From NCBI GenBank assembly GCA_963514005.1, contig OY740827.1:3596001-3660000 (forward strand): a stretch of 64,000 bases of DNA, given 5' to 3'. Numbering within the stretch: the first letter of the stretch is position 1; every line of letters starts with the position of its first letter. The notes below the pieces were generated by a model. The model saw nothing but the letters and a program-made list of their open reading frames with translations. It ran no database searches and was not told the DNA's origin. This DNA comes from Raja brachyura (lineage: Eukaryota). This document shows, piece by piece, positions 8,749 to 62,600 of this stretch. The translations under genes were made by a program, and so were the position numbers.

Positions 8749-9030
8749 ATTCGACAGTGAGGGTCACATCCCTCTCTGCCGTCCCGTGTTCATTCTCCGC
8801 CACACACTGATAGACCCCAGCATCCTGCCGTGTCAGCTGAGGGAACTCCATCCACAGCTCGTTGCTGGAACGTGTTGTGTTCAGCGTGACACCGAGATGT
8901 CTCCACGTCAGGTTAGACGCTGGGAAACTCTGGACGGAGCAGAGGATCGCTGCAGAGTTTCCTTCCTTTACATTGACCCGGGAACTGTTCGCGCCATTGT
9001 GGGAAGTGATTGAGAGATTCCGCGGAGCAT
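8749..9030 (-). CDS. Siglec-like gene A, Ig domain 4 exon (C2/I-set)
   Basis: tttag|AT...T|gtgagt, 282 nt, phase 1-1; YAPRNLSIT..ILCSVQSFPASNLTW..DAGVYQCVAENEHG. Confidence 0.9.
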
Positions 9031-9925
9031 CTAAATACAAACAAAGGTTTCAACGTGTTCACACGGCAGAATTCCACGTGCCAACCAAGACAATACGGAG
9101 AGAAAAGATGAAGTACAGATGTGACCAGTCTGCAGAAGGGTCTCACCCATTCCTTCTCTCCAGAAATGCTGCCTCACCCGCTGAGTATCTCCAGCTCTTT
9201 GTGTCTACCCTTGGTTTAAACCAGCACCTGCAGTTCCTTCCTCCATATTTTGTCTGCTCCACTGCAAAATCTCCTCAAGATATGTCTACTTTGAAAAGGT
9301 TCTCCTCTTTCCGACGAGAGTTGGAGTCATAGGGTGAGAGTGTGGAGACGGGCCCTTCGGCCTAATTTTCCCACACCGGCCAACATGTCCCAGATATACT
9401 AGTGCCACCCATATCCCTCCAAATCTGTCCTATCCATGTACCAAGGCCAGTGTGCCAAAAGCCTTTTTGACCACCCGATCTTCCTGCGACTCGATCTTCA
9501 AGGAACCTTGCAGCTGCACTCCTAGACCCCACTGCTCTTCATCAGTCCCCAGAGGCCTACCATTAACTGTGTAGGTCCTGCTCTTGTTAGAGCACCCAAA
9601 ATTCAACATCTCACACTTCTCGGTATTAAACTCCACCAACCATTCCTCAGCTCCTCTATCCAATCGATCAAGATCCTGCTGCAATCTTTCACAACAATGC
9701 AGTTCTGCCTCATCCTCTCTCCCTGCTCCCCCTCTGTGATGCCTCCTGTTCTCTGACCTTACATTCATTGTTCTTTATCTCTCGACATCATCATCTGTAT
9801 CCATTGTTTACCGTATCCCTAACCAGTCTGAAGAAGGGCCTCGACCCGAAACGTCGCCCGTTCCTTCTCTCCAGAGACGCTGCCTGTCCTGCTGAGTTAG
9901 TTCAGCTTTGTTGTGTCTATCTTCA

Positions 9926-12390
9926 GTACGAATGTAAGCTGGCCAATAATGTAAAAGAGGACAGCAAGAGTTTCAATGGACATATAATGAGTAAAAAAAG
10001 AGGCAAGACGGGATGTTGGGCCGCGGGAGAATGATGCAGGAGAAATCATGAAATGGAAGAGGAATTGAATAATGTTTTTGCATCAGTACTCACCGTGGAG
10101 GACACCAGCAGTGTGCCTGCAATCCTAGAGAGCCAGGGGTGGAAGTTAGTGGAGTGACGATTACTAAGGAGAGGGTGCTGGGAAAACTGAAAGGTCTGAG
10201 AGTGGATAAGTCACCTGGACTGGATGGACTGCACCACAGGGTTCTGAAGGAGATGGCCTCGGAGATTGTGGAGGCATTAGTTGTGATATTTCAGGAATCA
10301 CTAGAGTTAGGAGTGGTTCATGAAGATTGGAAATTTGCGAATATCGTCCCGCTGTACAAGAAAAGAGTGAAGCAGAAGAGCGGAAACTATGGGACGGTTA
10401 GCCTGCTACGATGGTTGGTAAGATTTTTAGTCAATTGTAAAGGAAGAGGTTACGCAGTACTTAGATGTTCACGAGAAAATGGGCCGAAGTCAGCATGGTT
10501 TTGTGATCTTGCCTGATGAATCTGTTGTAGTTCTTTGTGGAAGTTAATACCAGAACAGACAGAGGTGTGGCTGTGGATTAAAGAAAGCAGTGAAGAAGGC
10601 AAATGGCATGTTGGCCTTCATAGCGAGAGGATTTGAGAAAAGGAGCAAGGTGGTGCTATTGCAGTTGTACAGGGCCCTGGTGAGACCGCACCTGGAGTAT
10701 TGTGTGCCGTTTTGGTCACCTAAGTTGAGGAAGGACATTCTTGCTATTGTGGGATGGCATCGTAGGTACACGAGGTTAATTCCCAGGATGGTGGGACTGA
10801 CATATGATGAAATAATGGATCGACTGGGCTTGTATTCCCTGGAATTTAGGATGAGAGAGGATCTTAAAGAAGCATATACAATTCTCAAGGGTTTGGACAG
10901 GCTAGATGCAGGAAAAATGTTCCTGATGTTGGGGGAGTCCAGAACCAGCGCTCACTGTTTAACAATAAGGGGTAGGCCATTTAGGGGACTGAGATGAGGA
11001 AATACTTATTTACCCAGAGAGTTGTGAATCTGTGGAAATCTCTGCCACACAAGGCAGCGGAGGCCAATTCACTGGATGTTTTCAAGAGAGAGATAGGTAT
11101 AGCTCTTCGGGGTAACGGAATCAAGGGAAATGGGGGGAAAGCAGGAATAGGGTACTGATTTTGGATGATCAACCATGATCATTTTGAATGGCGGTGCTGG
11201 TTGGAAGGGCCGAATGGCCTACTCCTGCACCTATTTTCTACGATTCTTTACATAGACTTTCAGAATGTCTTGAATAAGGTGCCGCACGTCAGGCTGCTGG
11301 GCAAGATGAGAACCCATGGTATTAAAGGGAAGATACTAGCATGGATAGTGGATCGGCTGGATTTGCAATAAAGATTTGCAATAAAATTAGCATTTTCATG
11401 CTGCCAGCGATTAGTGAAGTTCCTCAAGGGTCGGTGCTGGGGCCGTTTCTCTTCATGTTGTATATTAATGATTTGGATAAGGGGATTGAAGGCGTTGTGG
11501 CCAGGTTTGCAGATGATACTGAGGTAGGAAGCGTAGAGAGAGCAAGGACTCTGCTGAAGGACTTGGACAGGTTGGGAGAGTGGGCAGAGAAGTAGCGGAT
11601 GAAATTCATTATTGCAAAGTGTTGAGTCATGCATTTTGGTATTAAGAGTAAAGGCGTAGAGTATTTTCTAAATGGAGAGAGAATCCAGAAATCGGAGATG
11701 CAAAGGGACTTGGGAGTGCTGGTGCAGGAATCCCAAAAAGTTAATTTGCAATTTGAATGGGCAGTAAGGAAGGCAAATTCAATGCTAGCGTTTATATCAA
11801 GAGTGCTAGAATACACAAACAGGGATGTAATGCTGAGGCCCCAGAAGGTGCTGGTCAGGCCGCATTTGGAATATTGTGAGCAAATTTGGGCCCCATATCT
11901 GAGGAAGGATGTGCTGGCTCTGGAGAGGGTCCAGAGGAGGTTTACAAGAATTATTCCAGGAATGAGTGGGATAGCGTATGATGAGCGCTTGACAGCACTG
12001 GACCTGTACTCGCTGGAATTTAGATGGTGGGGGGTCATTGAAATTTACAGAATAATTAAAGGCACGTGGATGTTGAAAGGTTGTTTCAACTTGTGGGAGA
12101 GTCTAGCACCATAGCTTCTGAAATAAATGCCCCTCTTTTAGAAATTAGGTGAGAAGGAGCTTCTTTAGTCAGAGGGCAGTTAATCTGTGGAACTCATTGC
12201 CACAGAGGGCTGTGGAGGCCAAGTTATTGGATATTTTTAAGGCAGAGATAAACAAGTTCTTGATTAGAACAATTGTCAAGGGTTATGGGGAGAATGCAGG
12301 GAAATGGCATTAGGAGGCAGAGAGCCATGATTGCATTGCGGAGTAGACTCGATGGACCGAATGGCCAAATTCTATTCCTATAACCTGTGA
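9926..12390 (+). mobile_element. Two older, internally deleted CR1 LINE fragments (paralog ~49620-52075)
   Basis: ORF2 pieces DKSPGLDGLH, LVRPHLEYC, PQGSVLGP, FADDT, with CR1 3' UTRs; shared by both duplicated units. Confidence 0.85.
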
Positions 12391-14124
12391 TATTCTAAAC
12401 TTGAACCACCTGTTTGAAGTCTAAAGGCAATCCTATATCACTTTCTCATTTGGAACAAGATACTATAGGTACAAGGTACAAAGTGCTGCATTAACGCAGC
12501 GGGTCAGGCAGCATCTCTGGAAAAAAGAAATAGGTGGCGTTTCGCGTCAAGACCCTTCTTCAGACTGAGTCGAAGAGCGGGAAATACGAGATATCGACGG
12601 CACAAATGAAAGAAATGTTAAAGCAACGATGATCAATAAAGATGTCGAGCCCACAATGGTCCATAACGAGTAGGTGATAACGAGTTATACAGGAAATGAA
12701 ACTCAAGAGGACAACAGTAAATAAACGATCCTTGTCACCTACCCTTGTTCTCCAGGATTGGAGGCATGAGCTACAGGGAGATGTTGGGACAGGCTGGGAC
12801 TCTATTCCTTGGAGGGCAGGCGGATGAGGGGTGATCTTATAGAGGTGATCAAAATTATTGGTAGGAATTAATCGGGTGGACGCAAAAAGTCTCTTGCCCA
12901 GAGCAGGGGAATCGAGGACCAGAGGACTTAGGTTTAAGAGGAGAGGAGAGAAGATTTAATGGAACCTGAGGGGTAACATTTTTCCACACAAAGGGTGGTG
13001 GGTGTATGGAACAAGCTGCCGGAGGAGGTAGTTGAGGTTGGAGGGATATCGGCCAAACGCAGGCATGTGGGACTAGTGTAGATGGGGCATGTTGGCTGGT
13101 TGACTCTATCTACACCTCACGCTGCCTTGGTAAGGCAGGCAGCATAATCAAGAACGAGTCACTCCCCAGCCACTCCCTCATCTCCCCTCTCCCATTAGGC
13201 AAGAGGTACAGAAGTGTGAAAACGCACACCTCCAGATTCAGGGACAGTTTCTTTCCAGCTGTTATCAGGCAACTGAACCATCCTGCCGCAACCAGAGCGC
13301 AGTCCTGAATTACTATTGTGCTATCTTTGAAGGGACTTTACTGGATTTTTCTTGCACTAAACGTGATTCCCTTTTCTTGTATGTGTACACAGTGGGTGAC
13401 ACTATTGTAATCAAGTAGACACAAAAAGCTGCAGCAACTCAGCGGGACAGGCAGCATCTCTGGAGATAAGGAATGGGTGACGTTTCGGTTCGAGACCTTC
13501 TTCAGACTATAGGGAGAGGTTGAGCACGCTAGGTTTAAGATGAGAGGGGAGAAGATTTAATAGATCCTGAGGAGTAACTTTTTAGTGGTGGGTACATGGA
13601 ACGGAGCTGCCGGAGGAGGGAGTTGAGGCTGGGACCATTGCAACGTTTAAAAAATAGTTGAACAGGTAACATGGATAAGACTTGTTTGGATGGATATGGG
13701 CTGAAGTAGGGCAGGTGGGACTAGTGTAGATGGGGCTCGTTGGCTGGTGTGGGCAAGTTGGGCCGAAGGGCCTGTTTCCGCGCTGCAAGACTCTATGACT
13801 CCAAAGATGTTGCCTGCCCCACTGAGTTGCTCCAGCACTTTGTGTTTTAAGCAACGTGAGGAGTGACGATACATAGAGGGAGGCATTGAGGGTTTCTGGG
13901 TAGAAAGACCAATATGATCCAACAATGTCAGGCAGAGGTTAGACAGGCTACATACAGGTGGGGAACACAAAAGATTGTAGATGTGGGCGGCACAGTGGCG
14001 TAGTGGGTAGAGCTGCTGCCTCACAGCGCCAGAGACCCGGGTTCCATCCCGGGTTCGTGCCTGTCTGCACGGAGTTTGCAGGTTCTCCCCGTGACCTACG
14101 TGGGGTTTCTCAGAGATCTTGAGG

Positions 14125-14755
14125 ATGTGTGTGTGTTTGAGTGAGCGCGTGTGTGTGAGAGAGAGCGTGTGGTTGTGCGATTGTATGTGAGAGAATGTGT
14201 GCGTGTGTACGTGTGTGTGTGCGTGCGCGTGTGTGCGTGTGTGTGTGCATGGGAGGGTGAATGTGTGTGCGTGATAGATGTGTGTGAGAGGGAGAACGCG
14301 TGTGTGTGTGTGATGGTTTGTGAGAGAATGTGTGTGTGTTTGAGTGCGGGTGTGTGTGCGAGAGAAGGAGATTGTGTGGTTGTGCGATTGTATGTGAGAG
14401 AATTTGTGTGTGTTTGAGTGAATGCGTGTGTGCGTGTGTATGTGTGTGTGTGTGCGAGGGAGGGTGAATGTGTGTGCGTGATAGAGGGTGTGATAGAGGG
14501 TGCGACAGAGAGCATATGTGTGTGATGGTTTGTGAGAGAATGTGTGTGTGTTTGAGTGGGTGTGTGTGGGAGTGAGTGAGTGTGAGTGAGATAAGGAGGG
14601 CGTGTGTGTGTGAGAGATGGTGTTTATGTGGAGAGCGAGAATGTGTGTGTGATGGTTTGTGAGAGAATGTGTGTGTGTGTGAGAGAGATGGTGTTCATGT
14701 GTGCGACAGAGAGAATGTGTGTGTAAGAGAGAAGGAGAGTGAGTGTGTGAGAGCG
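14125..14755. repeat. Complex (GT/GA)n low-complexity array (paralog 54178-54505, shorter)
   Basis: Direct inspection; source of the His/Thr-rich pseudo-ORFs. Confidence 0.9.
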
Positions 14756-14839
14756 TATGCGATGAATTCCAGTATCTCTCATGGGCCAATAATCCATCTG
14801 CCTTTATAGACAGTCAGATGACAGTGTGTGTCCACTCAC

Positions 14840-15121
14840 ATTCTACAGTGAGGGTCACATTCCTCTCTGCTGTCCCATGTTCATTCTCCGCCACACACTG
14901 ATAGACCCCGGCGTCCTGCTGTGTCAGCTGAGGGAACTCCATCCACAGCTCGTTGCTGGAACGTGTTGTGTTCAATGCGACACTGAGATATCTCCACGTC
15001 AGGTTAGACGCTGGGAAACTCTGGACGGAGCAGAGGATCGCTGCAGAGTTTCCTTCCTTTACACTGACCCAGGAATTGTTGACTTTGTCGGGGGAAGTGG
15101 TTGAGAGATTCTGGGGAGCGT
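14840..15121 (-). CDS. Siglec-like gene A, Ig domain 3 exon (C2/I-set)
   Basis: tttgcag|AC...T|gtgagt, 282 nt, phase 1-1, open; YAPQNLS..CSVQSFPASNLTW..DAGVYQC. Confidence 0.9.
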
Positions 15122-15932
15122 CTGCAAACAGATAAAATTCAGCAACCAGTTTTGTGGCACTTTCGGTGATCCTTGGATTGTAAAAGACTTTAGAGATACA
15201 CTGCGGAAATAGGTCCTTCAGCCCACCAAGTCCGCGCCGACCATCGAACACGCGTTCACACACTAGTTCTATGTTTAGGGAAATGAGAGATATAGATGAT
15301 GGTGTAGAGAGATATAGAACAAAGAATGAAAGATATGCAAAATAGTAACGATGATAAAGGAAACAGGTGTTCGCTGTTTGATGGGTGAGAACGAGACGCT
15401 GGTACGACTTGGGTGGGGGTGGGATGAAGAGAGAGGGAATGCAGGGTCCTGCCCAATATATGAGATCCTGTTCCTCCAATTTGCGTTTAGCCTCACTCTA
15501 ACAGTGCAGGACATAAAGGTCAGTGTGGGAATGGGAAGGAGAATTAAAGTGTTTAGCAACCGGGAGATCAGGTAGGTCATCCATATCTCTACATCATTGT
15601 CTATATCTCTTGTTTCCCTTTCCCGTGACTTTCACTCTGAAGAACGCTCTCGACCCGAAACATCACCCATTCCTTCTCTCCAAAGATGCTGCCTGTCCCG
15701 CTGAGTTACTCCAGCTTTTGGTGTTGATTTGATTAGTACGGGTGTCAGAGGTTATGGGGAGAAGGCACAAGAAAGGGGTTATGAGGGAGAGATAGATCAG
15801 CCATGATTGAATGGTGAAATAGACTTGATGGGCCGAATGGCCTAATTCTGCTCCTTCCACTTATCACGTTACGTACCAGCACTGCTCATAGATTATTGCT
15901 GTTCCTGCACAATAAACGATCTCCGTACTTAC

Positions 15933-16226
15933 ATTGCACAGTCATTGTGAGGATCTGCTCCGATGAGACAGTTGGGTATCTGACTCTGCAGGTGAGGTTT
16001 TGCCCGTGATGTTTGAGCACTGGGGTCAGGGACAGAACAGAAGTATATGTCAGAGTGTCTCCCCGCTGAGTTACGCTGTGTGAGGCTGACGTTGGTTCAT
16101 CAGCGGGGGTGACCCAGGTTAAGGTGGGTGCCGTTCCATCACACGTGGTGTTGAAGATGCAGGTCACGGTCACAGGCTGACCTGCCACCATTTCAGCAGG
16201 GAATATCGTGGGTTTATCTGTGAAAT
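15933..16226 (-). CDS. Siglec-like gene A, Ig domain 2 exon (C2-set with extra interdomain Cys)
   Basis: gttag|AT...T|gtaagt, 294 nt; KPTIFP..GQPVTVTCIFNTTCDGTAPTLTW..SVLSLTP..HHGQNLTCRV, typical of Siglec domain 2. Confidence 0.92.
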
Positions 16227-17201
16227 CTAACACACACAGAAACAGATACTGTTAGTTAAATATCACGAGATACATCGGTTCACATCGTAATCCCAGTCCC
16301 ACATGAGGAAGGATGTTTTTACAAGGTACAGAAGTGTGAAAACGCACACCTCCAGATTATCATGGACCAGTGTCACCCCCGGTCACTCCCTCTGCTCCCC
16401 TCTTCCACCAGGCAAGAGGTACAGAAGTGTGAAACTGCACAACTCCAGATTCAGGGACAGTTTCTTCCCGGCTGTTATCAGGCAACTGAACCATTCTACC
16501 ACAACCAGAGAGCGGTCTTGAACTACTATCATTGGTGACCTTCAGACTATCCCTGATCAGACTATGCTGGCTTAACCTTGCACTAAACGTTATTCCCTTA
16601 TCATGCAGCTGTACGCTGTAAACGGCTCGATTGTAATCATGTATTGTCTTTCCGCTGACTGGATAGCACGCAACAAAAGCTTTGCACTGTACCTCGGTAC
16701 ACGTGACAATAAAATTTACTAACTAAACTAAACTAAACAAGGATGATCCCTGAACAAGGAGGTACAATGGTCAGGGGAGGTTGAAAAGGTCGGAAACCAG
16801 TAATGTTATGAAGACCTGTGATCGGGAAGATGGGGACAGAGTTCTCCACTAAGGGCAGTAAGGATAAGACAGTCATTGTTTAGTTTAGTTCAGGCTGCGT
16901 GAAGTGTAGATGGAGTCGATATTAGGAGCATATATGGGCAATGAAAACCTGGCAATAACAGTGCAAAAACTGGAGGTGTCACGGTGATCCAGAAATGAAC
17001 CAGAAGGATCCTGATGCTGTGGTGTGTGTGTGAATAGGGAACGTGTACAGTCCAAAGTCTGATCAAGGATAGTCCGAGGGTCACCAGTGAGGCTGATGGT
17101 AGTTCAGCACTGCTCTCTGGTTGTGGTAGGATGGTTCAGTTGCCTGATAACTGCTGGGAAGAAACTGTTGAGTGAATGAGTGAATTATCCAGAGCACTTA
17201 C

Positions 17202-17567
17202 CAGTAACACTGAGCCGTGTTACAGGGTGGTAGTTGAAACGATTTCCCCCTCCAAAATCAACTCTGAAAAAATAAGGACCTGCATCTTGCAGCGTGATGT
17301 TGTCTATAACCAGGGAACAGTCGTTGTCTCTCAGGATTCCTGACAGCCGGGTCCGATGCTGAAACGTTGTTGATTCTAGACTGGAATTCCCGGAGTGGAA
17401 GGCCACAGAATCTTCTTTGTTCTTCTCACTGTTATACCAGATTCCAGTCCATGGTTTATTGTTCAGATTCGACGGGTACCTGTAGTGACACGGAATCCGT
17501 GCACACAAACCATTCTGCGCTGTCACATCTGGTGGAGTGTCCGCACTCCACTGTCCCGACACCACGG
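17202..17567 (-). CDS. Siglec-like gene A, V-set sialic-acid-binding domain exon
   Basis: ctcctcag|CC...G|gtaagt, 366 nt; QW..GLCARIPC.Y.YP..W..RTRLSG..DCSL.I..DAGPYFFR, i.e. Siglec cysteine pattern plus F-strand Arg. Confidence 0.92.
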
Positions 17568-17706
17568 CTGAGGAGAGAAGGAACAATCTTTAGCAGTGAA
17601 CACCCTGTCAGTTCACTGGACTCACTTTCCCCACCTTTTATCCTGCGCTGTGGACCTGGTGTGTACAGAGCGTAGAAGAGCGGCATGGTGGTGTAGGGGT
17701 AGAGCC

Positions 17707-18175
17707 TCCTCCTCACCGCCCCTCCCAGCGTGTCACTCCCTCCTCACCACCCCTCCCACAGCGTGTCACTCCCTCCTCACCGCCCCTCCCACAGCGTGTC
17801 ACTCCCTCCTCACCGCCCCTCCCACAGTGTGTCACTCCCTCCTCACCGCCCCTCCCAGTGTGTCACTCCCTCCTCACTGCCCCTCCCACAGTGTGTCACT
17901 CCCTCCTCACCGCCCCTCCCAGTGTGTCACTCCCTCCTCACCGCCCCTCCCACAGTGTGTCACTCCCTCCTCACCGCCCCTCCCAGTGTGTCACTCCTTC
18001 ACCGCCCCTCCTACAGTGTGTCACTCCCTCTTCACCGCCCCTCCCAGTGTGTCACTCCTTCACCGCCCCTCCCACAGTGTGTCACTGGCTCCTCATTGCC
18101 CCTCCCACAGTGCGTCACTCCCTCACACAGTGTATTATTGCCTCTTCAATGCCCCCCCACTGCGCGTCACTCCCA
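17707..18175. repeat. 29-31-bp C-rich minisatellite (cctcctcaccgcccctcccacagtgtgtcact), ~15 units
   Basis: Direct inspection; lies ~140 nt upstream of the V exon. Confidence 0.95.
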
Positions 18176-19059
18176 GGGACCAGTAGAGTGTCCCTTATAG
18201 CCAGGGTCCGGAGGGCAATCTGCACCAGTATATTCCATCTGCCACTTCTCTGTCCACTCTCCCAACCTGCCCAAGTCCTTCAGCAGAGTCCATGCTTTCT
18301 CTACACTATCTGCCCCTCCACCTATTTCCGTATCATCCGCAAACTTGACCACAAAGCCTTCAATCCCCTGGTCTAAATCATTAATATATAACGTGAAGAG
18401 TCGTGGTGTGTAGGAAGGAACTGCAGTAGCTGGTTTAAACTGAAGATTGACACAAAAATAGGGAGAAACTCAGCCGGACAGGCAGCATCTCTGGAGAGAA
18501 GGAATGGGTGACGTTTTGGCTCAAGACCCTTCTTCAGACTGAAAGTCACGGGAAAGGGCAACGGGAGATATAGACGGTGATGTAGAGAGACAGAGAACAA
18601 TGAATGAAAGATATGCATGAAAGTAATGATGATAAAGAAAACAAGTCATTGTTAGCTGATTGTTGGGTGAGAACGAGAATCTGGTGCGACTAGACTAAGG
18701 GAGCGATGGAGAGAGAGGGAATGCAGGGTTTACTTGAAGTGAGAGAAATCAATATTCATACCGCTGGGATGTAAGCTGCCCAAGCAAAATATGAGATCCT
18801 GTTCCTCCAATTTGCAGTTGGCCTCACTCTGACAGTGGAGGAGAACTAGGACAGAAAGATCAATGTGGGAATGGGAAGGGGAATTAAAGTGTTTGGCAAC
18901 CAGGAGATCAGGTAGGTCCAGGCGGACTGAGCGAAGGTGGTCAGCAAAACGATCGTTGCGGCCCCAGCACCGTCCCCTGCGGAACTCCGCTAGTCACTGG
19001 CACCCAACCAGTGAAAGCCTTCTCGCCCGTAAACACTTGTGAGTTGCTGCTGATGGTAC

Positions 19060-19099
19060 CTTGGAGAAGGGAGAGGAGGAAGCACGATCTCCCGATCAT
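19060..19099 (-). CDS. Siglec-like gene A, signal-peptide exon (whole exon 19060-19140 incl. 5' UTR)
   Basis: cttccag| acceptor at 19141; ATG..CAA G|gtacca encodes MIGRSCFLLSLLQ and splices in phase to (A)VVSG-QW; conserved in the paralog. Confidence 0.85.
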
Positions 19100-19582
19100 T
19101 GTCCGATCCCAGATATCCCGTCAGTCCCCGATCTCCCGGTCTGGAAGAGAAAGTGATTGCAGTAAAATTCTAGCGACCAATATACATTAAACGACATGGA
19201 TGCAATGCTAAGCTCTATAAGGTGCTGGTCAGGCCACATATGGGATAATGTGAGCAATTTTGAGCCCTGTATCTGATGAAGGATGTGTAGGCTCTGGATG
19301 GGTCTAGAGGAGGTTTACATGAATGAGTGGGTTTACATAGGATGAGCGTTTGATGGTACTGGGACTATACTCGCTGGAGTTTAGATGAATGAGGGGGGAC
19401 CTCAATGAAACTTGCCGAATAGTGAAAGGCTTGGATAGAGTGGATGTGGAGTGGTTATTTCCATAGCCTCAGAATTCTTTTAGGAAGGAAATGAGGAGGA
19501 ATTTCTTTAGTCAGAGGATGGTGAATCTGTGGAATTCTTTGCCACAGACGGCTGCGGAGGCCAATTCAAGCTTTCAAGGTCA

Positions 19583-31749: not shown

Positions 31750-31752
31750 TAT
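31624..31752. repeat. Four tandem 30-bp repeats at the CR1 5' truncation junction
   Basis: agtctttaaatgtcttccattgcgtatcca x4; single copy in the full-length element (~4392-4421). Confidence 0.93.
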
Positions 31753-44811: not shown

Positions 44812-44886
<75 letters not shown>

Positions 44887-52168: not shown

Positions 52169-52560
52169 ACAAAGTGCTGGAGTAACTCAGCGGGTCGGGC
52201 AGCATGACTGGAGAACGTGGACAGGTACAAAGTGCTGGAGTAACTCAGCGGGTCGGGCAGCATGACTGGAGAACGTGGACAGGTACAAAGTGCTGGAGTA
52301 CCTCAGCGGATCAGGCAGCATGACTGGAGAATGTGGACAGGTACAAGTGCTGGAGTAACTCAGCGGATCAGGCAGCATCACTGGAGAACGTGGACAGGTA
52401 CAAAGTGCTGGAGTAACTCAGCGGGTCAGGCAGCATCACTGGAGAACGTGGACAGTTACAAAGTGCTGGAGTAACTCAGCGGGTCAGGCAGCATCACTGG
52501 AGAACGTGGACAGGTACAAAGTGCTGGAGTAACTCAGCGGATCAGGCAGCATCTCTGGAA
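52169..52560. repeat. 58-bp tandem array (~7 units) derived from a dispersed-repeat segment
   Basis: aaagtgctggagtaactcagcgggtcgggcagcatgactggagaacgtggacaggtac at 52171, 52229, 52287...; one unit at the paralogous site ~12475. Confidence 0.92.
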
Positions 52561-54585
52561 AAAAGGAATAGGTGGCGTTTCGCGTCAAGACCCTCCTTCA
52601 GACTGAGAGTCGGAGAGCGGGAAATATGAGATATCGACGTCACAAATGAAAGATATGCAAAAGCAACGATGATCAATAAAGATGTCGAGCCAACAATGGT
52701 CCATTGTTGGCTCTAGGGTAGGTGATAACGAGTTTTACAGGAAATGAAACTCAAGAGGACAACAGTAAATAAACAACCCTTGTCACCTACCCTTGTTCTC
52801 CAGGATTGGAGGCATGAGCTACAGGGAGATGTTGGGACAGGCTGGGACTCTATTCCTTGGAGGGTAGGCGGATGAGGGGTGATCTAATAGAGATGATCAA
52901 AATTATTGCGAAGAATTGATCGGGTAGACGTACAAAGTCTCTTGCCCAGAGTAGGGGAATCGAGGACCAGAGGGCTTAGACTTAAGAGGAGAGGAGATTT
53001 AATGGAACCTGAGGGGTAACATTTTTCCACACAAAGGGTGGTGGGTGTATGGAACAAGCTGCCGGAGGAGGTAGGTGAGGCTGGAGGGATATAGGCCAAA
53101 CGCAGGCATGTGGGACTAGTGTAGATGGGGCATGTTGGCTGGTTGACTCTATCTGCACCTCACGCTGCCTTGGCAAGGCAGGCAGCATAATCAAGAACGA
53201 GTCACTCCCCAGCCACTCCCTCTTCTCCCCTCTCCCATTGGGCAAGAGGTACAGAAGTGTGAAAACGCACACCTCCAGATTCAGGGACAGTTTCTTCCCA
53301 GCTGTTATCAGCCAACTGAACCATCCTGCCACAACCAGAGCGCAGTCCTGAATTACTATTGTGCTATCTTTGATGGGACTTTACTGGATTTTTCTTGCAC
53401 TAAACGCGATTCCCTTTTCTTGTCTGTGTACACAGTGGGTGACACTATTGTAATCAAGTAGACACAAAAAGCTGGAGTAACTTAGCGGGACAGGCAGCAT
53501 CTCTGGAGATAAGGAATGGGTGACATTTTGGTTCGAGACCTTCTTCAGACTATAGGGAGAGGTTGAGCACGCTAGGTTTAAGATGAGAGGGGAGAGATTT
53601 AATAGATCCTGAGGGGTAAATTTTTTTCATGTAGTGGTTGGTACATGGAACGGAGCTGCCGGAGGAGGGAGTTGAGGCTGAGACCATTGCGACGTTTAAA
53701 AAATAGTTGAACAGGTAACATGGATAAGACTTGTTTGGATGGATATGGGCCGAAGTAGGGCAGGTGGGACTTAGTGGGCAGGTGGGGCTCGTTGGCCGGT
53801 GTGGGCAAGTTGTACCAAGGGGCCTGTTTCCACGCTGTACAACTCAATGACTCCAAAGATGTTGCCTGACCCATTGAGTTTCTCCAGCACTTTGTTTTTA
53901 AGCAACGTGAGGAGTGACGATACATAAAGGGAGGCATTGAGGGTTTCTGGGTAGAAAGCCCAATATGATCCAACAATGTCAGGCAGAGGTCAGACAGGCT
54001 ACATACAGGTAGGGAACACAAAAGATTGTAGATGTGGGCGGCATGGTGGCGCAGTGGGTAGAGCTGCTGTCTCACAGTGCCAGGGACCCGGGTTCCATCC
54101 TGACCACCGGTGCCTGTCCGTACGGAGTTTGCAGGTTCTCCCCGTGACCTGCGTGGGGTTTCTCAGAGATCTTGAGGATGTGTGTGTGTTTGAGTGAGCG
54201 CGTGAGAGAGAGAGCGTGTGGTTGTGCGATTGTATGTGAGCGAATGTGTGTGTGCGTGTGTGCGCGTGTGTGTGCGTGCGTGCGTGCGTGTGTGTGTGCG
54301 TGGGAGGGTGAATGTGTGTGCCTGATAGATGTATGTGAGAGGGAGAACGCGTGTGTGTGTGTGATGGTTTGTGAGAGAATGTGTGTGTGTTTGAGTGAGC
54401 GTGAGTGTGTGTGAGAGTGAGTGTGTGTGAGAGATGGTGTTCATGTGTGCGACAGAGAGAATGTGTGTGTGTGAGAGAAGGAGAGTGAGTGTGTGAGTGT
54501 GTAAGCGATGAATTCCAGTGTCTCTCATTGTCGAATAATAAATCTGCCTTTATAGACAGTCACATGACAGTGTGTGTCTACTCAC

Positions 54586-54867
54586 ATTCTACAGTGAGGG
54601 TCACATCCCTCTCTGCTGTCCCGTGTACATTCTACCCCACACACTGATAGACCCCGGTGTCCTGCCGTGCCATCTGAGGGAACTCCATCCACAGCTCGTT
54701 GCTGGAATGTGTTGTGTTCAGCGTGACACTGAGATGTCTCCACGTCAGATTAGATACTGGGAAACTCTGGACGGAGCAGAGGATCGCTGCAGAGTTCCCT
54801 TCCTTTATACTGACCCAGGAATTGTTCACGTTGTTGGGGGAAGTGATTGAGAGATTCTGGGGGGCGT
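54586..54867 (-). pseudogene. Siglec-like gene B, Ig domain 3 exon with in-frame nonsense codon
   Basis: 282 nt, splice sites intact; YQCVG-TAG (54632-54634) where gene A has GAG. Confidence 0.85.
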
Positions 54868-55818
54868 CTGCAAACAGATAAAATTCAGCAACCTGTTTTA
54901 CGGCACTTTGGGTGATCCTTGGATTGTAAAAGACTTTAATCTTTAGACTTTAGAGATGCAGCTCGGAAACAGGCCCTTTGGCCCACCCAGCCTGCGCCGA
55001 CCATGGATCACCCGTTCACACGCTAGTCCTAAGGTTAGTTTAGAGATACAGTGTGGAGACAGACCAATTTGGCCCACCGAGTCTGCGCCGACTTCTATGT
55101 TTAAGGAAATGAGAAATATCGTCAATGGTGTAGAGAGATATAGAACAAAGAATGAAAGATATGCAAACTATTTACGATGATAAAGGAAACAGGCCATTGT
55201 TAGCTGTTTGTTGGGTGAGAACGAGAAGCTGGTGCGACTTGGGTGGGAGAGGGATGGAGAGAGAGAGGGAATGCCGGGGCTACCTGAAGTTAGAAAAACC
55301 AATATTCATAGCAATATTCATACCACCACGTAAGCTGCCCAAGCAAAGTATGAGATGCTGATCCTCCAATTTGTGTTTAGCCTCACTCTGACAATGGAGG
55401 AGCCCTAGAAAAGTCAGTGTGGGAATGCGAAGGAGAATTAAAGTGTTTAGCAGCCGGGAGATCAGGTAAGTCCTACATCTCTCTACATCATCGTCTATAT
55501 CTCTCGTTTCCCTTTCCTGTGACTTTCGCTCTGAAGAACCCTCTCAACCCGAAACTTCACCCATTCCTTCTCTCCAGAGATGCTGCCTGTCCCGTGGAGT
55601 CACTCCAGCTTTTGGTGTTGATTTGATTAGTATGGATGTCAGAGGTTACGGGCAGAAGGCAGAAGAAAGGGGTTAGGAGAGATAGATCAGCCATTAATGA
55701 ATGGCAGAGTGAACTTGATGGGCCGAATGGCCTAATTCTGCTCATATCGCCTATGACCTTATGTACCAGCACTGCTGGTTATTGCTGTTCCTGCACAATA
55801 AACGATGTCCATACTTAC

Positions 55819-56112
55819 ATTGCACAGTCATTGTGAGGATCTGCTCCGATGAGACAGTTGGGTATCTGACTCTGCAGGTGAGGTTTTGCCCGTGATGTTT
55901 GAGCGCTGGGGTCAGGGACAGAACAGAAGTGTATGTTAGAGTGTCTCCCCGCTGAGTTACGCTGTGTGAGGCTGACGTTGGTTCATCAGCGGGGGTGACC
56001 CAGGTTAAGGTGGGAGCCGTTCCATCACACGTGGTGTTGAAGATGCAGGTCACGGTCACAGGCTGACCTGCCACCATTTCATCAGGGAATATCGTGGGTT
56101 TATTTGTGAAAT
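55819..56112 (-). CDS. Siglec-like gene B, Ig domain 2 exon
   Basis: 294 nt, phase 1-1, open; 3 aa differences from gene A. Confidence 0.9.
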
Positions 56113-57085
56113 CTAACACACACAGAAACAGATACTATTAGTTAAATATCACTGGATACATCGGTTCACATTGTAATCCCAGTACCACATGAGGAAGGAT
56201 GTTTTTACATGGTATAGAAGTGTGGAAACACACACCTCCAGATTATCAAGGACCAGTCTCACCCCCGGTCACTCCCTCTGCTCCCCTCTTCCACCGGGCA
56301 AGAGGTACAGAAGTGTGAAAACGCACACCTCCAGATTCAGGGACAGTTTCTTCCCAGCTGTTATCAGGCCGCTGAACCATCCAACCACAACCAGAGAGCC
56401 ATCCTGAACTATCTACCTCATTGGTGACCTTCAGACTATCCCTGATCAGACTATGCTGTCTTAACCTTGCACTAAACGTTATTCCCTTATCATGCAGCTG
56501 TACACTGTAAACGGCTCGATTGTAATCATGTATTGTCTTTCCGCTGACTGGATAGCACGCAACAAAAGCTTTGCACTGTACCTCGGGACACGTGACAATA
56601 AAATTAACTAACTAAACTAAACTAGGATGATCCCTGAACAAGGAGGTACAATGGTCAGGGGAGGTTGAAAAGGTTGGGAATCAGGAATGTTATGATGACC
56701 TGTGATCGGGAAGATGGGGACAGAGTTCTCCACTAAGGGCAGTAAGGATAAGACAGTCATTGTTTAGTTTAGTTCAGGCTGCGTGAAGTGTAGATGGAGT
56801 CGATATTAGGAGCATATATGGGCAATGAAAACCTGGCAATAACACTGCAAAAACTGGAGGTGTCACGATGATCCAGAAATGAACCAGAAGGATCCTGATG
56901 CTGTGGTGTGTGTGTGAATAGGGAACGTGTACCGTCCAAAGTCCGATCAAGGATAGTCCGAGGGTCACCAGTGAGGTTGATGGTAGTTCAGCACTGCTCT
57001 CTGGTTGTGGTAGGATGGTTCAGTTGCCTGATAACTGCTGGGAAGAAACTGTTGAGTGAATGAGTGAATTACACAGAGCACTTAC

Positions 57086-57451
57086 CAGTAACACGGAGCT
57101 GAGTTACAGTGGGGTAGCTGTAATTATTTCGCCCTCCAAATTTAACTCTGAAAAAATAAAGACCTGCATCTTGCTGCGTGACGTTGTCTATAACCAGGGA
57201 ACAGTCGTTGTCCCTCAGGACTCCTGACAGCCGGGTCCGATGCTGAAACGTTGTTGATTCTAGACTGGAATTCCCGGAGTGGAAGGCTACTGAAACTTTG
57301 TTGTTTGTGTCCTTGTTAAACCAGATTCCAGTCCGTGGTTTATTGTTCAGATGCGACGGGTACCTGTAGCAACACGGAATCCGTGCACACAAACCATTCT
57401 TCGCTGTCACATCTCGTGGATTGTCCCCACTCCACTGTCCCGACATCACGG
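57086..57451 (-). CDS. Siglec-like gene B, V-set domain exon
   Basis: 366 nt, open; GLCARIPCC..DCSL..DAGLYFFR, essential Arg retained. Confidence 0.92.
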
Positions 57452-57585
57452 CTGAGGAGAGAAGGAACAATCTTTAGCAGTGAACACCCTGTCAGTTCAC
57501 TGGACTCACTTTCCCCACCTTTTATCCTGCGCTGTGGACCTGGTGTGTACAGAGCGTAGAGCGGCATGGTGGTGTAGGGGTAGAG

Positions 57586-58300
57586 CCTCCTCCTCACCGC
57601 CCCTCCCAGTGTGTCACACCCTCCTCACCACCCCTCCCAGTGTGTCACTCCCTCCTCACCGTCCCTCCCACAGTGTGTCACTCCCCCCTCACCGCCCCTC
57701 CCACAGTGCGTCACTCCCTCCTCACCGCCCCTCTCGCAGTGCGTCACTCTCTCCTCACCGCCCCTCCCACAGTGTGTCACTCCCTCCTCACCACCCCTCC
57801 CAGTGTGTCACTCCATCCTCACCACCCCTCCCACAGTGTGTCACTCCCTCCTCACCGCCCCTCCCAGTGTGTCACTCCCTCCTCACCCTCCCTCCCAGTG
57901 TGTCACTCCCTCCTCACCGCCCCTCCCAGTGTGTCACTCCCTGCTCACCGCCCCTCCCAGTGTGTCACTCCATCCTCACCACCCCTCCCACAGTGCGTCA
58001 CTCCCTCCTCACCGCCCCTCCCACAGTGTGTCACTCCCTCCTCACCGCCCCTCCCACAGTGTGTCACTCCCTCCTCACCACCCCTCCCAGTGTGTCACTC
58101 CATCCTCACCACCCCTCCCACAGTGTGTCATTCCCTCCTCACCGCCCCTCCCACAGTGCGTCACTCCCTCCTCACCGCCCCTCCCACAGTGCGTCACTCC
58201 CTCCTCACCGCCCCTCCCACAGTGTGTCACTCCCTCCTCACCGCCCCTCCCACAGTGCGTCACTCCCTCCTCACCGCCCCTCCCACAGTGTGTCACTCCC
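57586..58300. repeat. 29-31-bp C-rich minisatellite, ~23 units
   Basis: Same unit as 17707-18175, longer array. Confidence 0.95.
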
Positions 58301-59627
58301 AGGGACCAGTAGAGTGTCCCTTGTAGCCAGGTCCAGAGGTCAAGGAGCACCGCCACTCCACCTAGTGACACTTTGCTCAGTCCGCTTGGAGGAGTAGGGG
58401 GAGGAGTGACTCTGCTGTCAGCGACCGAAGGGCTGGTGATGGGATCTAGGGAGTTGGTAGGGCCGAAGATGGCCTGGCTGGGTTGCTCCTAGGCCTGGAG
58501 AAGCTGGCCATCCGCGAGTCACGGCGCCAGGCAGAAGAGGGCTTTGCCCGGCCAGTTGGTTGCATCATTACCAGGGTTACATCCGCGCCCGGGTGGTGTT
58601 AGAGAGGGACATGGTTATATAGTGGTTTATTAGTATATCTGTAGCATAGTTGATTGGAAATGTAGTGTCTCAATAATTTGGTGATTTTGTAATATTGGGG
58701 AGGGTGTGTCACCATGGTTTGGGTTTTTTGGGGTTTTTGTATCGTGATTGTAATTGAATAAATTATTTTGGATACAAAAAAAAGTGCGGTGCTCCCTCCT
58801 TTGCTGCAGTATATTCCATCTGCCATGTCCCTGTGCACCCCTCCAACCTGTCCAAGTTCAACTGCAGAGTCCCTGCTTTCTCTACACTACCTGCCCCTCC
58901 ACCTATTTCCGTATCATCTGCAAACTTGGCCACAAAGCCTTCAATCCCCTTGTCCAAATCATTAATGTTCAACGTGAAGAATTGTGGTGTACAGGAAGGA
59001 ATTGCGGATACTGGTTTAAACTGAAGATTGACACAAAAATCTGGAGTAACTCAGTGGGACAGGCAGCATCTCTGGAGAGAAGGAATGGGTGATGTTTCGG
59101 GTCGAGACCCTTCCTCAGACTGTAAGTCACGGGAAAGGGAAACGAGAGATATAGATGATGATGTGGAGAGATACAGAACAATGGATGAAAGATATGCAAA
59201 AACGTAATGATGATAAAGAAAACAAGCTATTGTTAGCTGTTTGTTGAGTGAGAACGAGAAGCTGGTGCGACTTGGGTGGGGGAGGGATGGAGAGAGAGGG
59301 AATGCAGGGTTTACTTGAAGTGAGAGAAATCAATATTCATACCGCTGGGTTGTAAGCTGCCCAAGCAAAATATGAGATGCTGTTCCTCCAATTTGCATTT
59401 GGGCTCACTCTGACAGTGGAGGAGAACTAGGACAGAAAGTTCAGTGTGGGAATGGGTAGGGGAATTAAAGTGTTTCGCAAACGGGAGATCAGGTAGGTCA
59501 GGCGGACTGAGCAAAGGTGGTCAGCGAAATGATCGTTGCGGCCCCAGCACTGACCCCTGCGGAACTGGCAGCCAACCAGTAAAACCCTCCTCGCCCGTAA
59601 ACACTTGTGAGTTGCTGCTGATGGTAC

Positions 59628-59667
59628 CTTGGAGAAGGGAGAAGAGGAAGCACGATCTCCTGATCAT
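59628..59667 (-). CDS. Siglec-like gene B, signal-peptide exon (whole exon 59628-59708)
   Basis: MIRRSCFLFSLLQ + G|gtacca; acceptor cttccag at 59709. Confidence 0.85.
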
Positions 59668-62600
59668 TGTCCGATCCCAGATATCCCGTCAGTCCCCGAT
59701 CTCGCGGTCTGGAAGAGAAAGTGATTGCAGTAAAACTCCAGCGACCAATATACATTAAGCGACACGGATGCAATGCTGAGGCTCTTTCAGGCGCTGGTCA
59801 GACCGCACTTGGATTATTGTGAGCAATTTTCAGACCCATGTCTGATGAAGGATATGCAGGCGCTGGAGAGCGTCCAGAGGAGGCTTACAAGAATGGTCCC
59901 AGGAATGAGTGGGTTTACATGTGATGAGTATTTGACGGCACAGGGCCTGTACTCGCTCGAGTTTAGAAGAATGAGGGGGGAACACAATGAAACTTACCGA
60001 ATAATGAAATGGCTTGGATAGAGTGGATGTGGATAGGATATTTTCACTAGTGGGAGAGGTCATAGCCTCAGAATTAAAGGACTTCTTTTAGGACGGAAAT
60101 GAGGAGAAATTTCTTTGGTCAGAGGGTGGTGAATCTGTGGAATTCTTTGCCACAGACGGCTGCGGAGGCCAATTCAAGCTTTCAAGGTCAGTTTATTGTC
60201 ACATGTACCAATTAAGGTACAGTGAAATTCGAATTACCAAAAAAAAGCAACAAGAGACACAACTACATAAAAGTTAACATAAACATCCACCACAGCAGAC
60301 TCCCCACGATCCTCAATGTGACGGAAGGCAATAAAGTCCAAACTTCTTCCTCTTGTATTCTCCTGCGGTCGGGGCAAGCGAACCATCCGCAGTCTGGGGG
60401 ATTGAAGCTCCCGCAGCCAGCGGTCGAAGACCCCGCTTCAGGGCGATCGAAGCTCCTGCGGCTTGGAGTTTCCCGAAGTCGGTCTCTAACCAGAGACCAC
60501 AAGCTCCGTGATGTTAAAGTCCACAGGCACCCACGGTTGGAGCCCCAAAATCGACCCCCGACAGGGATCGCAAGCTCCGTGATGGTAAGTCCTGCAGGCA
60601 CCTGGGGTGGAGCTCTCGAAGTCGGACTCCAGCAAAGGCCACCAACTCCTCGATGTTAGGCCGCAGTGTGGACGAAGATATGATACGGAAGAAAATCGCA
60701 TCTCCGTCAAGGTAAGTGAATAGGAAAATTTTCCCCAACATCCCCCCCACTCCCCACATAAAACAAGCTAAAAAACACATTTAACACACACACACACACA
60801 GAACAAAGAAGGAAGGGACAGACTGTTGGCGAGGCAGCCATTGTTGGCGCCACCTGGTGGTTAAGTCAGTGGATATTGTTAAGGCAGAGATAGATAGATT
60901 ATGAATTAGTAGGGGTTAAGGGGAGAAGGCAGGAGAATGGGGTTAAGAGGGAGTGATAGATCAGCCATGATTGAATGGTGGAGTAGATTTGATGGGCCAA
61001 ATGGCCTAATTCTACTATCACTTATGACCTTATTTTGGTTTTTAAAAGCTTCCCAATTGTTAACTTCCTGCTAATCTTTGCCAAGTAACATGATGGCACA
61101 CAGTGGTGCAGCGGTAGAGTTGCTGCCTCACAGCGCCAGAGACCCGACTTCGATCCTGACTACAGCTGCTGTCTGTACAGAGTTTGTACGTTCACCCTGT
61201 GATCTGCGTGGATTTTCTCCGCGATCTCCAATTCCTTCCACGCTCCAAAGATGTACGGGTTCGTAGGTTAATTAGAATGTATTGGTCCGAAGTGTGTGTA
61301 GGACAGTGTTGGTCACTGGTCAGTGCGGGCTGAAGGGCCTGTTTTCACACTTGTCACTAAACTAAACACAGAACTAGTTTGTGAACGGGTGATCGCTGGT
61401 CGGCATGGACTCGTGGGATGAAGGGCCTGTTTCCGCGCTGTATCTCTAAACTAAACATGGAACTAGTGTGTGAATGGGTGATCGATTGTCAGAGCGGACT
61501 GAGAGGGTCCAGAGGAGGTTTACGAGAACAATCCCGGAGAATGAGTGGGTTAACGTACGATGAGCATTTGACAGCACTGGGCCTGTACTCGCTGGAGTTT
61601 AGAAGGATGAGGGGACCTCATTGAAACGCACCGAATGGTGAAAATCCTGGAAAGAGTGGATGTGGAGAGGATGTTTCAACTAATGGGAGAGGTCATAGCC
61701 TCAGAATTAAAGGATGTTCTTTTAAGAAGGAGATGAGTAGGAATTTATGTAGTCGGAGGGTGGTGAATCTGTGGAATTATTTGCCACAGAAGGCTGTGGA
61801 GGCCGTCATTGGATAATTTTAGTTGGAGAGTCTCGGACCAGAAGGCAATGCCTGAGAATAAAAGGACGTAGTTTTAGGAAGGAGATGAGGAAGCATTTCT
61901 TAAGCCAGAGTGTGGTGAATCTGTGGAATTCATTGCCACAGATGGCTGTGGAGGCCAAGTTAATGTGTTTTCACTTCCCTCTGGAAGGCGACTCCGGACT
62001 GTCAAAGCCGCCACATCCAGGCATAAAAACAGTTTTTATCCATGAGTAGTTGCTCCGCTCAACAGTCAAAGATCTGTAGCCTCCCTTTGATCTGGTATTT
62101 TGTTGGTTCACATGCTTGAGCAATGGTGTTTTATCATTAATGTTTTATTTTTATTATTAATGTTTAGTGTTTTCTGAGTCATTTGTAACTGTCACTGTAT
62201 GTCATGTTGTTACTTGTGGGCGGAGCACCAAGGCAAATTCCTTGTATGTGAATATTTGGCCAATAAACATACTTACTTTCAAGGTGGAGATTGACAGATT
62301 CTTGATTAGTACAGGTGTCAGTGTTTATGGGGAGAAGGCAGGAGAATGGGTTCGAGAGGGAAAGATAGATCAGCCATGATCGAATGGCGGAGTGGACTCG
62401 ATGGGCCGAATGGCCTAAGTCTGCTATTGTGTCTTACAAAGTTATGAAAAGCTGCCTGACCCGCTGAGTTCCCTCAGTAGATGGAATGTCGCTACAGATT
62501 CCCGCATCTGCAGTCTGTTGTGTCTCCAGTGGGAGAAGGTACAATTTGCAAATTTCAGATGATATGGAAACTTGTGATGTTGTGGTTGGCAATGAAGGTG

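Follow-up and report, generated by a model that had tools for sequence, protein, structure and literature searches.

Mammalian CD33-related Siglecs include the paired receptors Siglec-5/-14 and Siglec-11/-16, and their cytoplasmic tails carry an immunoreceptor tyrosine-based inhibitory motif (ITIM) together with an ITIM-like motif. According to the parts of PMC7226832 covered here, fish regularly have only Siglec-1, CD22, MAG, and Siglec-15 and lack CD33-related inhibitory Siglecs; sharks are not mentioned in those parts. A table in a 2026 survey puts the Siglec family cluster at Tetrapoda (PMC13262535). A literature search for Siglecs in elasmobranchs and cartilaginous fish, covering the text of articles, found no paper on the expansion described below. 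Here, a stretch of 64,000 nucleotides from Raja brachyura (assembly GCA_963514005.1, contig OY740827.1, positions 3,596,001 to 3,660,000 of the forward strand; hereafter the window) is analyzed. It is likely that two members of an expanded Siglec family of sharks and rays lie in the window as tandem paralogs, copy 2 being tail-less, and that the V domains of the two copies have split in their ligand-facing parts. The family is already predicted by RefSeq, and the genes in the window are further members of it.

Exon ends were set by reading splice sites, and all searches were run exon by exon. The resulting gene models, with E-values given for matches to Pfam domains and solved structures, are as follows.

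19060..19099, minus strand: copy 1 leader exon (MIGRSCFLLSLLQ plus one base) with a phase-1 GT donor; the same leader opens homologues
17202..17567, minus strand: copy 1 V-set exon of 121 full codons, with W6, C21, C26, C83, and R101 (YFFR); V-set 2e-12, MAG 3.8e-16
15933..16226, minus strand: copy 1 C2-set exon; of its three Cys, that in NTTC is the extra one; C2-set_2 2.1e-10, Siglec-10 7e-7, CD33 1.6e-6
14840..15121, minus strand: copy 1 Ig3 (I-set) exon, open; I-set 1.9e-11
8749..9030, minus strand: copy 1 Ig4 (I-set) exon, open; I-set 5.4e-13, MAG domain 3 2.6e-19
59628..59667, minus strand: copy 2 leader exon (MIRRSCFLFSLLQ plus one base) with a phase-1 GT donor
57086..57451, minus strand: copy 2 V-set exon, with W, Cys pattern, and YFFR kept and an extra Cys at residue 27; 28 of 121 residues differ from copy 1
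55819..56112, minus strand: copy 2 C2-set exon; 97.9% nucleotide identity to copy 1, with contig ends at 55819 and 56113
54586..54867, minus strand: copy 2 Ig3 exon with an in-frame TAG at 54634-54632 and intact splice sites; the most diverged of the four I-set exons
48445..48726, minus strand: copy 2 Ig4 exon, open; I-set Pfam match
40920..41038, minus strand: copy 2 transmembrane (TM) exon, HGSERTWKCVAAMIVLAVILVASVIITAIFWAARCRNK followed by TGA; strong phase-1 acceptor

Both leader exons are 40 nt long and end in a phase-1 GT donor, and the leader pattern MIGKSYFLL.LLQAVVSG opens homologous proteins of other species. All eight immunoglobulin (Ig) exons are bordered by AG acceptors and GT donors and are in phase 1 at both ends, and the leader-V-C2-Ig-Ig build with clean phase-1 junctions put forward in the original prediction is thus confirmed by splice-site reading. 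The pair of paralogs expected at a spacing of about 40 kb was likewise recovered, the copies lying ~39.7 kb apart on the minus strand within a segmental tandem duplication. A tblastn search of the window with four exon peptides yielded exactly two V, two C2, and four I-set exons, and a search for more exons with 53 homologous proteins recovered those eight Ig exons again, besides the leader of copy 1 and a handful of matches due to chance or repeats. Seven of the eight Ig exons were scanned against Pfam (V-set 2e-12, C2-set_2 2e-10, I-set 5e-13), copy 2 Ig3 being excluded for its stop codon. Each copy is predicted to encode a type I membrane protein in which a signal peptide is followed by a V domain of the sialic-acid type, one C2 domain, and two I-set domains.

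The assignment to the Siglec family draws on both N-terminal domains. Among solved structures in the PDB, the V exon matches MAG best (3.8e-16, 62.7 bits), followed by sialoadhesin (4.1e-14), Siglec-15 (6.7e-12, 49 bits), Siglec-5, CD33, Siglec-10, -8, and -7 (5e-11 to 2e-9), and CD22 (2e-4, 24.6 bits). The C2 exon is closest to Siglec-10 (7e-7) and CD33 (1.6e-6), then to MAG and CD22, and the I-set exon matches contactins and MAG domain 3 (2.6e-19), MAG being the best among Siglecs. When a V+C2 profile of 37 relatives was searched, 20 Siglec sequences led with 85-184 bits, and the next match was JAML with 64 bits. Both copies have QW near the N-terminus, GLCARIPC, DCSL, and YFFR in V, as well as FNTTCDG in domain 2, so that the Trp, the Cys pattern, the extra Cys, and the YFFR Arg originally singled out as Siglec hallmarks are present in each. 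The YFFR Arg aligns with the Arg of MAG YYFRGD and sialoadhesin YNFRFE and the Trp with sialoadhesin residue 2, and R101 is retained in at least 90% of 37 aligned relatives. The Cys layout is of the Siglec type, with GLCARIPC and DCSL in V, no Cys at YFFR, and VTC, NTTC, and LTC in the C2 exon; it would provide a B-E intrasheet bond and an interdomain bond between V and domain 2. Given the gap of 20 bits below the Siglec matches and the fact that V and domain 2 both match Siglecs, the genes qualify as predicted Siglecs, displaying every sequence-level feature of the family that was examined. The conserved Arg, the N-terminal Trp, and the G-strand aromatic residue (F in copy 1 and Y in copy 2) of the V domain are the residues that we take to be the textbook sialic-acid contacts, through which the V domain would bind sialylated glycans. 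At V codon 27 (57371-57369), copy 2 encodes Cys (IPCCYRY), whereas His stands there in copy 1 and in seven of eight skate outgroups, and Gln in the remaining one; this Cys27 appears as an unpaired fourth Cys adjoining the interdomain Cys.

The family extends far beyond the window. A V-exon search of 1.84 billion cluster representatives returned 934 representatives at E<=1e-3, 209 at E<=1e-10, and 24 at E<=1e-30. Names were looked up for 30 of the best 150: all ten named top matches are RefSeq models of sharks and rays (called 'Siglec', 'MAG-like', or 'hemicentin-1-like'), and the other 20 include true MAG (gecko, frog, and cyprinid), lizard sialoadhesin, and MAG-like, Siglec-like, or CD22-like models of gar, bowfin, sturgeon, paddlefish, and teleosts. 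No mammalian CD33-related Siglec stood among the 150 matches listed, of which these 30 were named. With the full-length skate relative P0014 as query, 154 proteins were found at E<=1e-20. The 120 matches listed among them comprise 119 elasmobranch entries and one transcript contig, with at least 14 rows from Rhinoraja longicauda, at least 14 from Hemitrygon akajei, at least 10 from Amblyraja radiata, at least nine from Hypanus sabinus, and at least six from Leucoraja erinacea, some of the rows being isoforms of one gene. In a first V-domain tree (75 rows, quick IQ-TREE run, support from the SH-like approximate likelihood ratio test, SH-aLRT), all 38 V domains of the elasmobranch family (36 from databases plus both window copies) form one clade with an SH-aLRT of 99 and a stem of 0.57, and the window V domains group with P0008 of Amblyraja radiata (support 98), which marks the genome as skate-like. 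A separate clade (support 99) unites the true MAG sequences of gecko, frog, and sturgeon, and sialoadhesin and the bony-fish groups also lie outside the elasmobranch clade. The phylogeny that had been asked for as a check is in hand for MAG and sialoadhesin, and a one-to-one orthology with either is rejected by it. In a tree of 67 batoid V rows, a clade of skates (25 rows, support 93) stands apart from one of stingrays (26 rows, support 97), which indicates that the paralogs arose, or were homogenized, within each order.

The tails of the relatives are diverse, comprising pairs of an ITIM and a motif resembling the immunoreceptor tyrosine-based switch motif (ITSM) (LLYASI...TEYAQI), YxN pairs, an ITAM (immunoreceptor tyrosine-based activation motif) of the form ESPYQELxLGERDLYSDL, or no tail at all. 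The ITAM sequence is, presumably, very like that of DAP12 itself. Members with ITIM/ITSM (P0308, P0293, P0222), ITAM (P0209, P0210, P0214), and tail-less ends (P0208, P0250, P0255) are intermingled in the skate V clade, a hallmark of paired-receptor families; activating and inhibitory forms thus occur side by side in the predicted proteins of relatives, outside the window. Taken together with the 38-row clade (support 99), the 154 proteins at E<=1e-20, and the skate and stingray subclades, these predicted tails bear out the proposed lineage-specific expansion and characterize it as a paired-receptor-like expansion of putative Siglecs in elasmobranchs. RefSeq models of several sharks and rays (P0001, P0002, P0003, P0004, and P0205) contain two to four consecutive Siglec-type V domains; these are either true multi-V Siglecs or merged neighboring genes, and the window genes have one V exon each.

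The two copies were compared exon by exon with Nei-Gojobori counts (dN and dS, nonsynonymous and synonymous divergence; omega, their ratio).

V exon: 32 nonsynonymous and 5 synonymous differences; dN 0.125, dS 0.061, omega 2.0
C2 exon: 3 nonsynonymous and 3 synonymous differences; dN 0.014, dS 0.041, omega 0.34
Ig3 exon: 15 nonsynonymous and 8 synonymous differences; dN 0.074, dS 0.138, omega 0.54
Ig4 exon: 3 nonsynonymous and 3 synonymous differences; dN 0.014, dS 0.046, omega 0.31

In the V domain, 28 of 121 residues differ between copy 1 and copy 2. The flanks show no mismatch in 130 positions upstream of V and 42 mismatches in the 970 positions of the V-C2 intron (K 0.045), and the nonsynonymous differences in V are in excess both of the mismatches in this intron (Fisher p=2.6e-5) and of the nonsynonymous differences in C2 plus Ig4 (p=7e-9). 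A nonsynonymous rate about three times that of the neighboring intron is not what neutral decay of copy 2 would produce. The 28 replaced residues fall into three patches (codons 2-17, 27-52, and 90-119), with only four changes in codons 53-89. Alignment to sialoadhesin and MAG places these patches in the A strand, the B-C and C-C' region, and the F-G region, which we take to be the ligand face, the C-C' loop presumably setting specificity. Polarization against eight skate outgroups assigns 11 derived changes to copy 1 and 14 to copy 2 and leaves three ambiguous. The regions of V that face the ligand (the A strand, the C-C' loop, and the G strand) may thus be where the copies were driven or held apart, and the two probably read different glycans.

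The second distinctive feature concerns the C-terminus of copy 2. Minus-strand hydropathy scans of 1-8748 and 20900-48440 left 41038-40920 as the only credible TM exon. A single base separates its TGA from the phase-1 GT donor that follows (TGAG/GTGTGAG, the slash marking the junction), a retained site through which ITAM-tailed relatives connect to their tail exons, and AATAAA signals follow 305 and 325 nt downstream of the stop. Copy 2 is accordingly read as a protein that ends in the TM exon with a five-residue tail, RCRNK, and no signaling motif. Scans of the window for ITIM, ITSM, and YxN motifs revealed no tail exon, and a lenient tblastn search of the window with the tails of 15 relatives yielded no ITAM, ITIM, or ITSM exon, the weak matches lying within copies of a long interspersed nuclear element (LINE). 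The TM exon aligns to the C-termini of P0255, P0245, P0208, and P0250 (E 2.6e-12 to 1.6e-9), each of them finishing with RNK or RSK directly after the span. P0208 (Leucoraja, 458 aa) has the V-C2-Ig-Ig-TM build of the window gene, and P0255, P0245, and P0250 (364-365 aa) have one I-set domain fewer than P0208. The tail-less form is thereby represented by predicted proteins of three skate genera and by one transcript contig, which argues for a maintained receptor class rather than a recent accident and suggests that the predicted class is old. In Rhinoraja longicauda P0209, P0210, P0214, and P0202, the ITAM tail ESPYQELxLGERDLYSDL stands on the TM exon type of the window. These ITAM-tailed Rhinoraja proteins share the same span (...AIFWAARCRGK), followed by RESSV...YQEL...YSDL, and the low-quality model P0204, which reads through the intron, has R where the window has TGA. 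A change of Arg to a stop in the final complete codon of the TM exon may have given rise to the tail-less class from the ITAM-tailed form. All five tail-less sequences have a Lys immediately beyond the hydrophobic run (WKC), and it recurs as GKY in the ITAM-tailed ones. A tail-less receptor might signal via a partner, possibly through this conserved Lys at the outer membrane edge; alternatively, it could act as a non-signaling decoy beside inhibitory and ITAM-bearing sisters with near-identical V domains.

Copy 2 also differs from copy 1 in its Ig3 exon, which reads VYQCVG*NVHG in copy 2 and VYQCVAENEHG in copy 1, the TAG at 54634-54632 replacing a GAG. This exon is 83-84% identical to the Ig domains of Leucoraja P0208, and the other three I-set exons are 88-91% identical to them. 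Ig3 of copy 2 would be dead, and skipping it would keep the frame (phase 1 on both sides) and give a V-C2-Ig-TM protein, a form that occurs as a 365-aa transcript product in a related sample (P0255). Transcript evidence was drawn from run contigs at 85% likeness over 54500-59700; 20 runs in nine studies share sequence words with the window, none of them as many as half of the words sampled (best fraction 0.38). A 1467-nt contig of run X18 joins Ig3 (54586-54857), C2 (55819-56113), and V (57148-57451) without introns, and a 462-nt contig of run X15 contains the whole C2 exon with eight differences in 295 bases, flanked by other sequence. Across the unique intron bins (57458-58153), depth is about zero in X15, X16, and X18, and X1 gives coverage. 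The spliced contigs and empty intron bins together indicate that family members are transcribed and spliced at these exact exon ends. P0255, which derives from a 1467-nt Logan contig, is probably the product of the X18 contig, the sole link being their equal length.

Both copies are embedded in a larger duplication. In the self-BLAST of the window, collinear blocks pair 1-20859 with 44742-61453 at 83-97% identity, which defines two units.

1..20859, no strand assigned: right part of duplicated unit 1 (copy 1 and a private LINE), from self-BLAST
44742..61453, no strand assigned: matching part of duplicated unit 2 (copy 2, leader to Ig4), from self-BLAST

In unit 1 coordinates, the block identities are 82.7% (1-888), 93.0% (420-2297), 96.6% (7522-10543), 94.2% (10570-12521), 92.4% (12474-14378), 91.8% (14671-15192), 92.9% (15459-18124), 88.0% (18226-19843), and 83.3% (19939-20859). 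Self-BLAST found no match between 61454-64000 and the sequence from 20860 onward; since homology ends at 20859 and 61453, the window consists of two units with a junction near 20860 and a unique right flank. The window sequence contains no N, is continuous across this junction, and includes no genes flanking the cluster. By duplication geometry, the TM exon of copy 1 must lie to the left of the window. The array had been expected to extend past both edges: on the left, copy 1 itself runs off the window, and on the right, where homology stops at 61453, an extension finds no support. A 5.2-kb LINE at 2296-7522 is present in unit 1 and absent from unit 2 in the self-BLAST; lying in the copy 1 Ig4-TM intron, it was inserted after the duplication, which points to a recently active element.

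Several observations weigh against the reading of two diverged, functional Siglec paralogs, and they are best considered alongside its rivals. The spliced contigs differ by 3-18% from the window and therefore come from paralogs or other species, not from the window copies; the spliced transcripts on which the original prediction was made to depend thus stand for family members at these exon ends and fall short for the two window copies. The 3' end of copy 1 is outside the window. The conserved Lys sits at the edge of the hydrophobic run and not inside it, and it is shared by the ITAM-tailed kin, for which reasons the adaptor role is weakened. The TAG in copy 2 Ig3 is backed only by the assembly and perhaps one contig, and the site reads GAG in all contigs of X1, X15, and X18 and in two of three in X16; as these contigs may represent other exons of the family, they neither confirm nor refute the stop. 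If the TAG is genuine, copy 2 could be a pseudogene whose protein ends after V-C2, leaving one live gene beside a decaying duplicate, and the high divergence of its Ig3 (83-84% versus 88-91% identity to P0208 for the other I-set exons) would fit such decay. The persisting constraint on C2 (omega 0.34) and Ig4 (0.31), the intact splice sites, leader ATG, and TM exon of copy 2, the in-frame skip of Ig3 with 364-365-aa V-C2-Ig-TM proteins in the relatives P0255, P0245, and P0250, and a nonsynonymous change in V (0.125) well above that of the flanking intron (0-0.045), which neutral decay cannot yield, make a pseudogene an unlikely outcome, albeit one of some weight. A comparable chance, short of probable, is given to the view that the V excess is due to patchy gene conversion, either by homogenization of the flanks or by import of V patches, rather than to positive selection. 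The comparison of nonsynonymous with synonymous differences within V itself is not significant (Fisher p=0.09), and divergence along the unit is patchy, being 0.03 around Ig4, 0.045 in the V-C2 intron, and 0.11-0.13 in the leader-V and C2-Ig3 introns, so that conversion mosaics could explain part of the excess. Indeed, gene conversion probably reshaped the pair and may have contributed to the V excess: with divergence ranging from 0.03 to 0.13, the nucleotide divergence of V (37/363) equals the older background, V1 is nearer to Amblyraja P0288 (83%) than to V2 (77%), and the mixture of tail types within V clades implies exon exchange in the family. However, the patches are almost purely nonsynonymous (28 replacement versus four silent codons, with four changes in codons 53-89), whereas imported paralog sequence should carry silent changes too; derived states occur in both copies; and leaving the patches unconverted would itself require selection. 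That the V patches have been kept different argues for selection for diversity, whatever their source.

The remaining rivals question what the genes are rather than how they diverged. The two copies might be alleles, that is, haplotypes misassembled in tandem, an artefact that the original prediction named as its own possible undoing. High overall similarity and identical gene order speak for it, but the copies diverge by 3-17%, the 5.2-kb LINE is private to copy 1, the intron-1 minisatellite has 13.1 versus 22.1 copies, the V proteins are only ~77-79% identical, and the sequence is without N and unbroken across the junction near 20860. On these grounds, and chiefly for the divergence, the private LINE, and the lack of gaps, such an artefact is judged very improbable. 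Still less credence is due to the idea that the genes are orthologs of one conserved Siglec (MAG, CD22, Siglec-1, or Siglec-15): MAG is the top individual PDB match for the V exon and, among Siglecs, for the I-set exon, and RefSeq calls some relatives 'MAG-like', yet the true MAG clade (99) lies outside the elasmobranch clade (99), the C2 exon is closest to Siglec-10 and CD33, the V exon reaches only 24.6 bits with CD22 and 49 bits with Siglec-15, and a single skate species has dozens of paralogs. In a further alternative, the V domain would retain the scaffold of Siglecs while recognizing a ligand that is not sialic acid. The predicted binding is read from conserved residues only, the G-strand aromatic residue is F or Y and not the W of sialoadhesin, and copy 2 has the odd extra Cys at residue 27; however, the Arg, the Trp, and the Cys pattern are kept in both copies and nearly throughout the family, and a non-sialic ligand seems rather improbable for these putative receptors. 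The reading retained is that of two tandem paralogs with diverging V domains and a tail-less copy 2.

Several repeats accompany the two units. The LINE at 2296-7522 has a second copy at 29529-31653 with 97% identity over 2.1 kb, and its open reading frames (ORFs) match reverse transcriptase, endonuclease, and a GDSL-type esterase. The leader-V intron contains a minisatellite with a 33-bp unit, CCTCCTCACCGCCCCTCCCACAGTGTGTCACTC, at 17708-18124 (13.1 copies) and 57589-58300 (22.1 copies), which creates long spurious ORFs on the plus strand. Arrays of an 87-91-bp repeat occur at 420-895, 21113-21462, 21919-22212, 45134-45790, and 61327-61500. They adjoin the ends of the duplicated blocks (20859, 61453, and 44742), and the array at 61327-61500 is inverted; they might be mediators of unequal crossing-over or merely a common repeat. 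Sequence related to this repeat shows very high contig depth in sequencing runs. Between the copies, on the plus strand, 32676-34488 contains a run of ORFs of 191, 86, 71, 71, and 82 aa, one of which resembles a reverse-transcriptase N-terminus; three scanned ORFs are without a Pfam match at E<=0.001. The run is probably a decayed retroelement.

If inhibitory, ITAM-bearing, and tail-less members coexist in sharks and rays as their sequences predict, such glycan-based sensing of self and non-self would be far older than thought or would have evolved twice. The window offers a natural experiment, a young paralog pair with differences concentrated in the ligand-facing parts of V, and its value lies in a clean pair of V domains for ligand comparison together with a conserved tail-less receptor class. 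A wider scheme is proposed tentatively and is doubtful as a whole: skates would possess a three-state system of sialic-acid sensing, independent of mammalian CD33-related Siglecs, in which near-identical V domains engaged in an arms race are carried on an ITIM, on a built-in DAP12-like ITAM, or on a conserved tail-less end produced by an old Arg-to-stop change. In this scheme, the tail-less receptors of the window would be far from inert and would signal by pairing through the boundary Lys with an adaptor or with ITAM-bearing sisters, and the copies would be selected for different sialoglycans.

The nearest counterparts of the window gene are P0208 ('myelin-associated glycoprotein-like', Leucoraja erinacea), P0250 (Amblyraja radiata), P0245 (Rhinoraja longicauda), and P0255, which belong to the same class. 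All share the leader, V, and C2 of the window gene, followed by one or two I-set domains and a TM end of the form ...W(A)A(R/C)CR(N/S)K with no tail; their identity to the window is 86-92% in C2, 88-92% in the Ig exons, and ~59-62% in the TM exon, but only 72-83% in V. P0208, P0250, and P0245 come from species other than that of the window and are automatic predictions with misleading names. With MAG (Siglec-4), the window genes share the Arg, the Trp, and the Cys layout, and MAG gives the best V match among solved structures (62.7 bits). MAG, however, is encoded by one conserved gene and has five Ig domains followed by a long tail, whereas the window gene has four Ig domains and a five-residue tail, belongs to a multicopy family, and lies outside the MAG clade. 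Like Siglec-15 and other DAP12-dependent receptors, copy 2 has a short tail and a conserved Lys by the span; unlike in Siglec-15, this Lys is at the outer edge (WKC) and not within the span, and the V similarity is lower (49 bits). The comparison with CD33-related Siglecs is the most instructive. The skate genes resemble them in forming a tandem, fast-evolving, lineage-specific array with an accelerated V-set domain beside a conserved C2, and, by the predicted proteins of their relatives, in joining near-identical V domains to inhibitory, activating, or no tails; the LLYASI...TEYAQI tails of relatives are similar to the ITIM and ITIM-like pair of CD33-related Siglecs. The C2 exon has its best PDB matches in Siglec-10 and CD33, and the V exon scores higher with MAG and sialoadhesin. 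In contrast to CD33-related Siglecs, there is no charged residue within the TM core and no linker exons were seen in the window genes, and the activating skate kin carry an ITAM of their own, unlike those CD33-related Siglecs that borrow DAP12. Copy 2, with its tail RCRNK, has neither an ITIM and ITIM-like pair nor a charged TM residue, and in this respect the 'CD33-like' label of the original prediction does not apply to it. The label is better understood as an analogy, one that is apt for the tandem array, the fast V domain, and the paired ends of this putative elasmobranch family.

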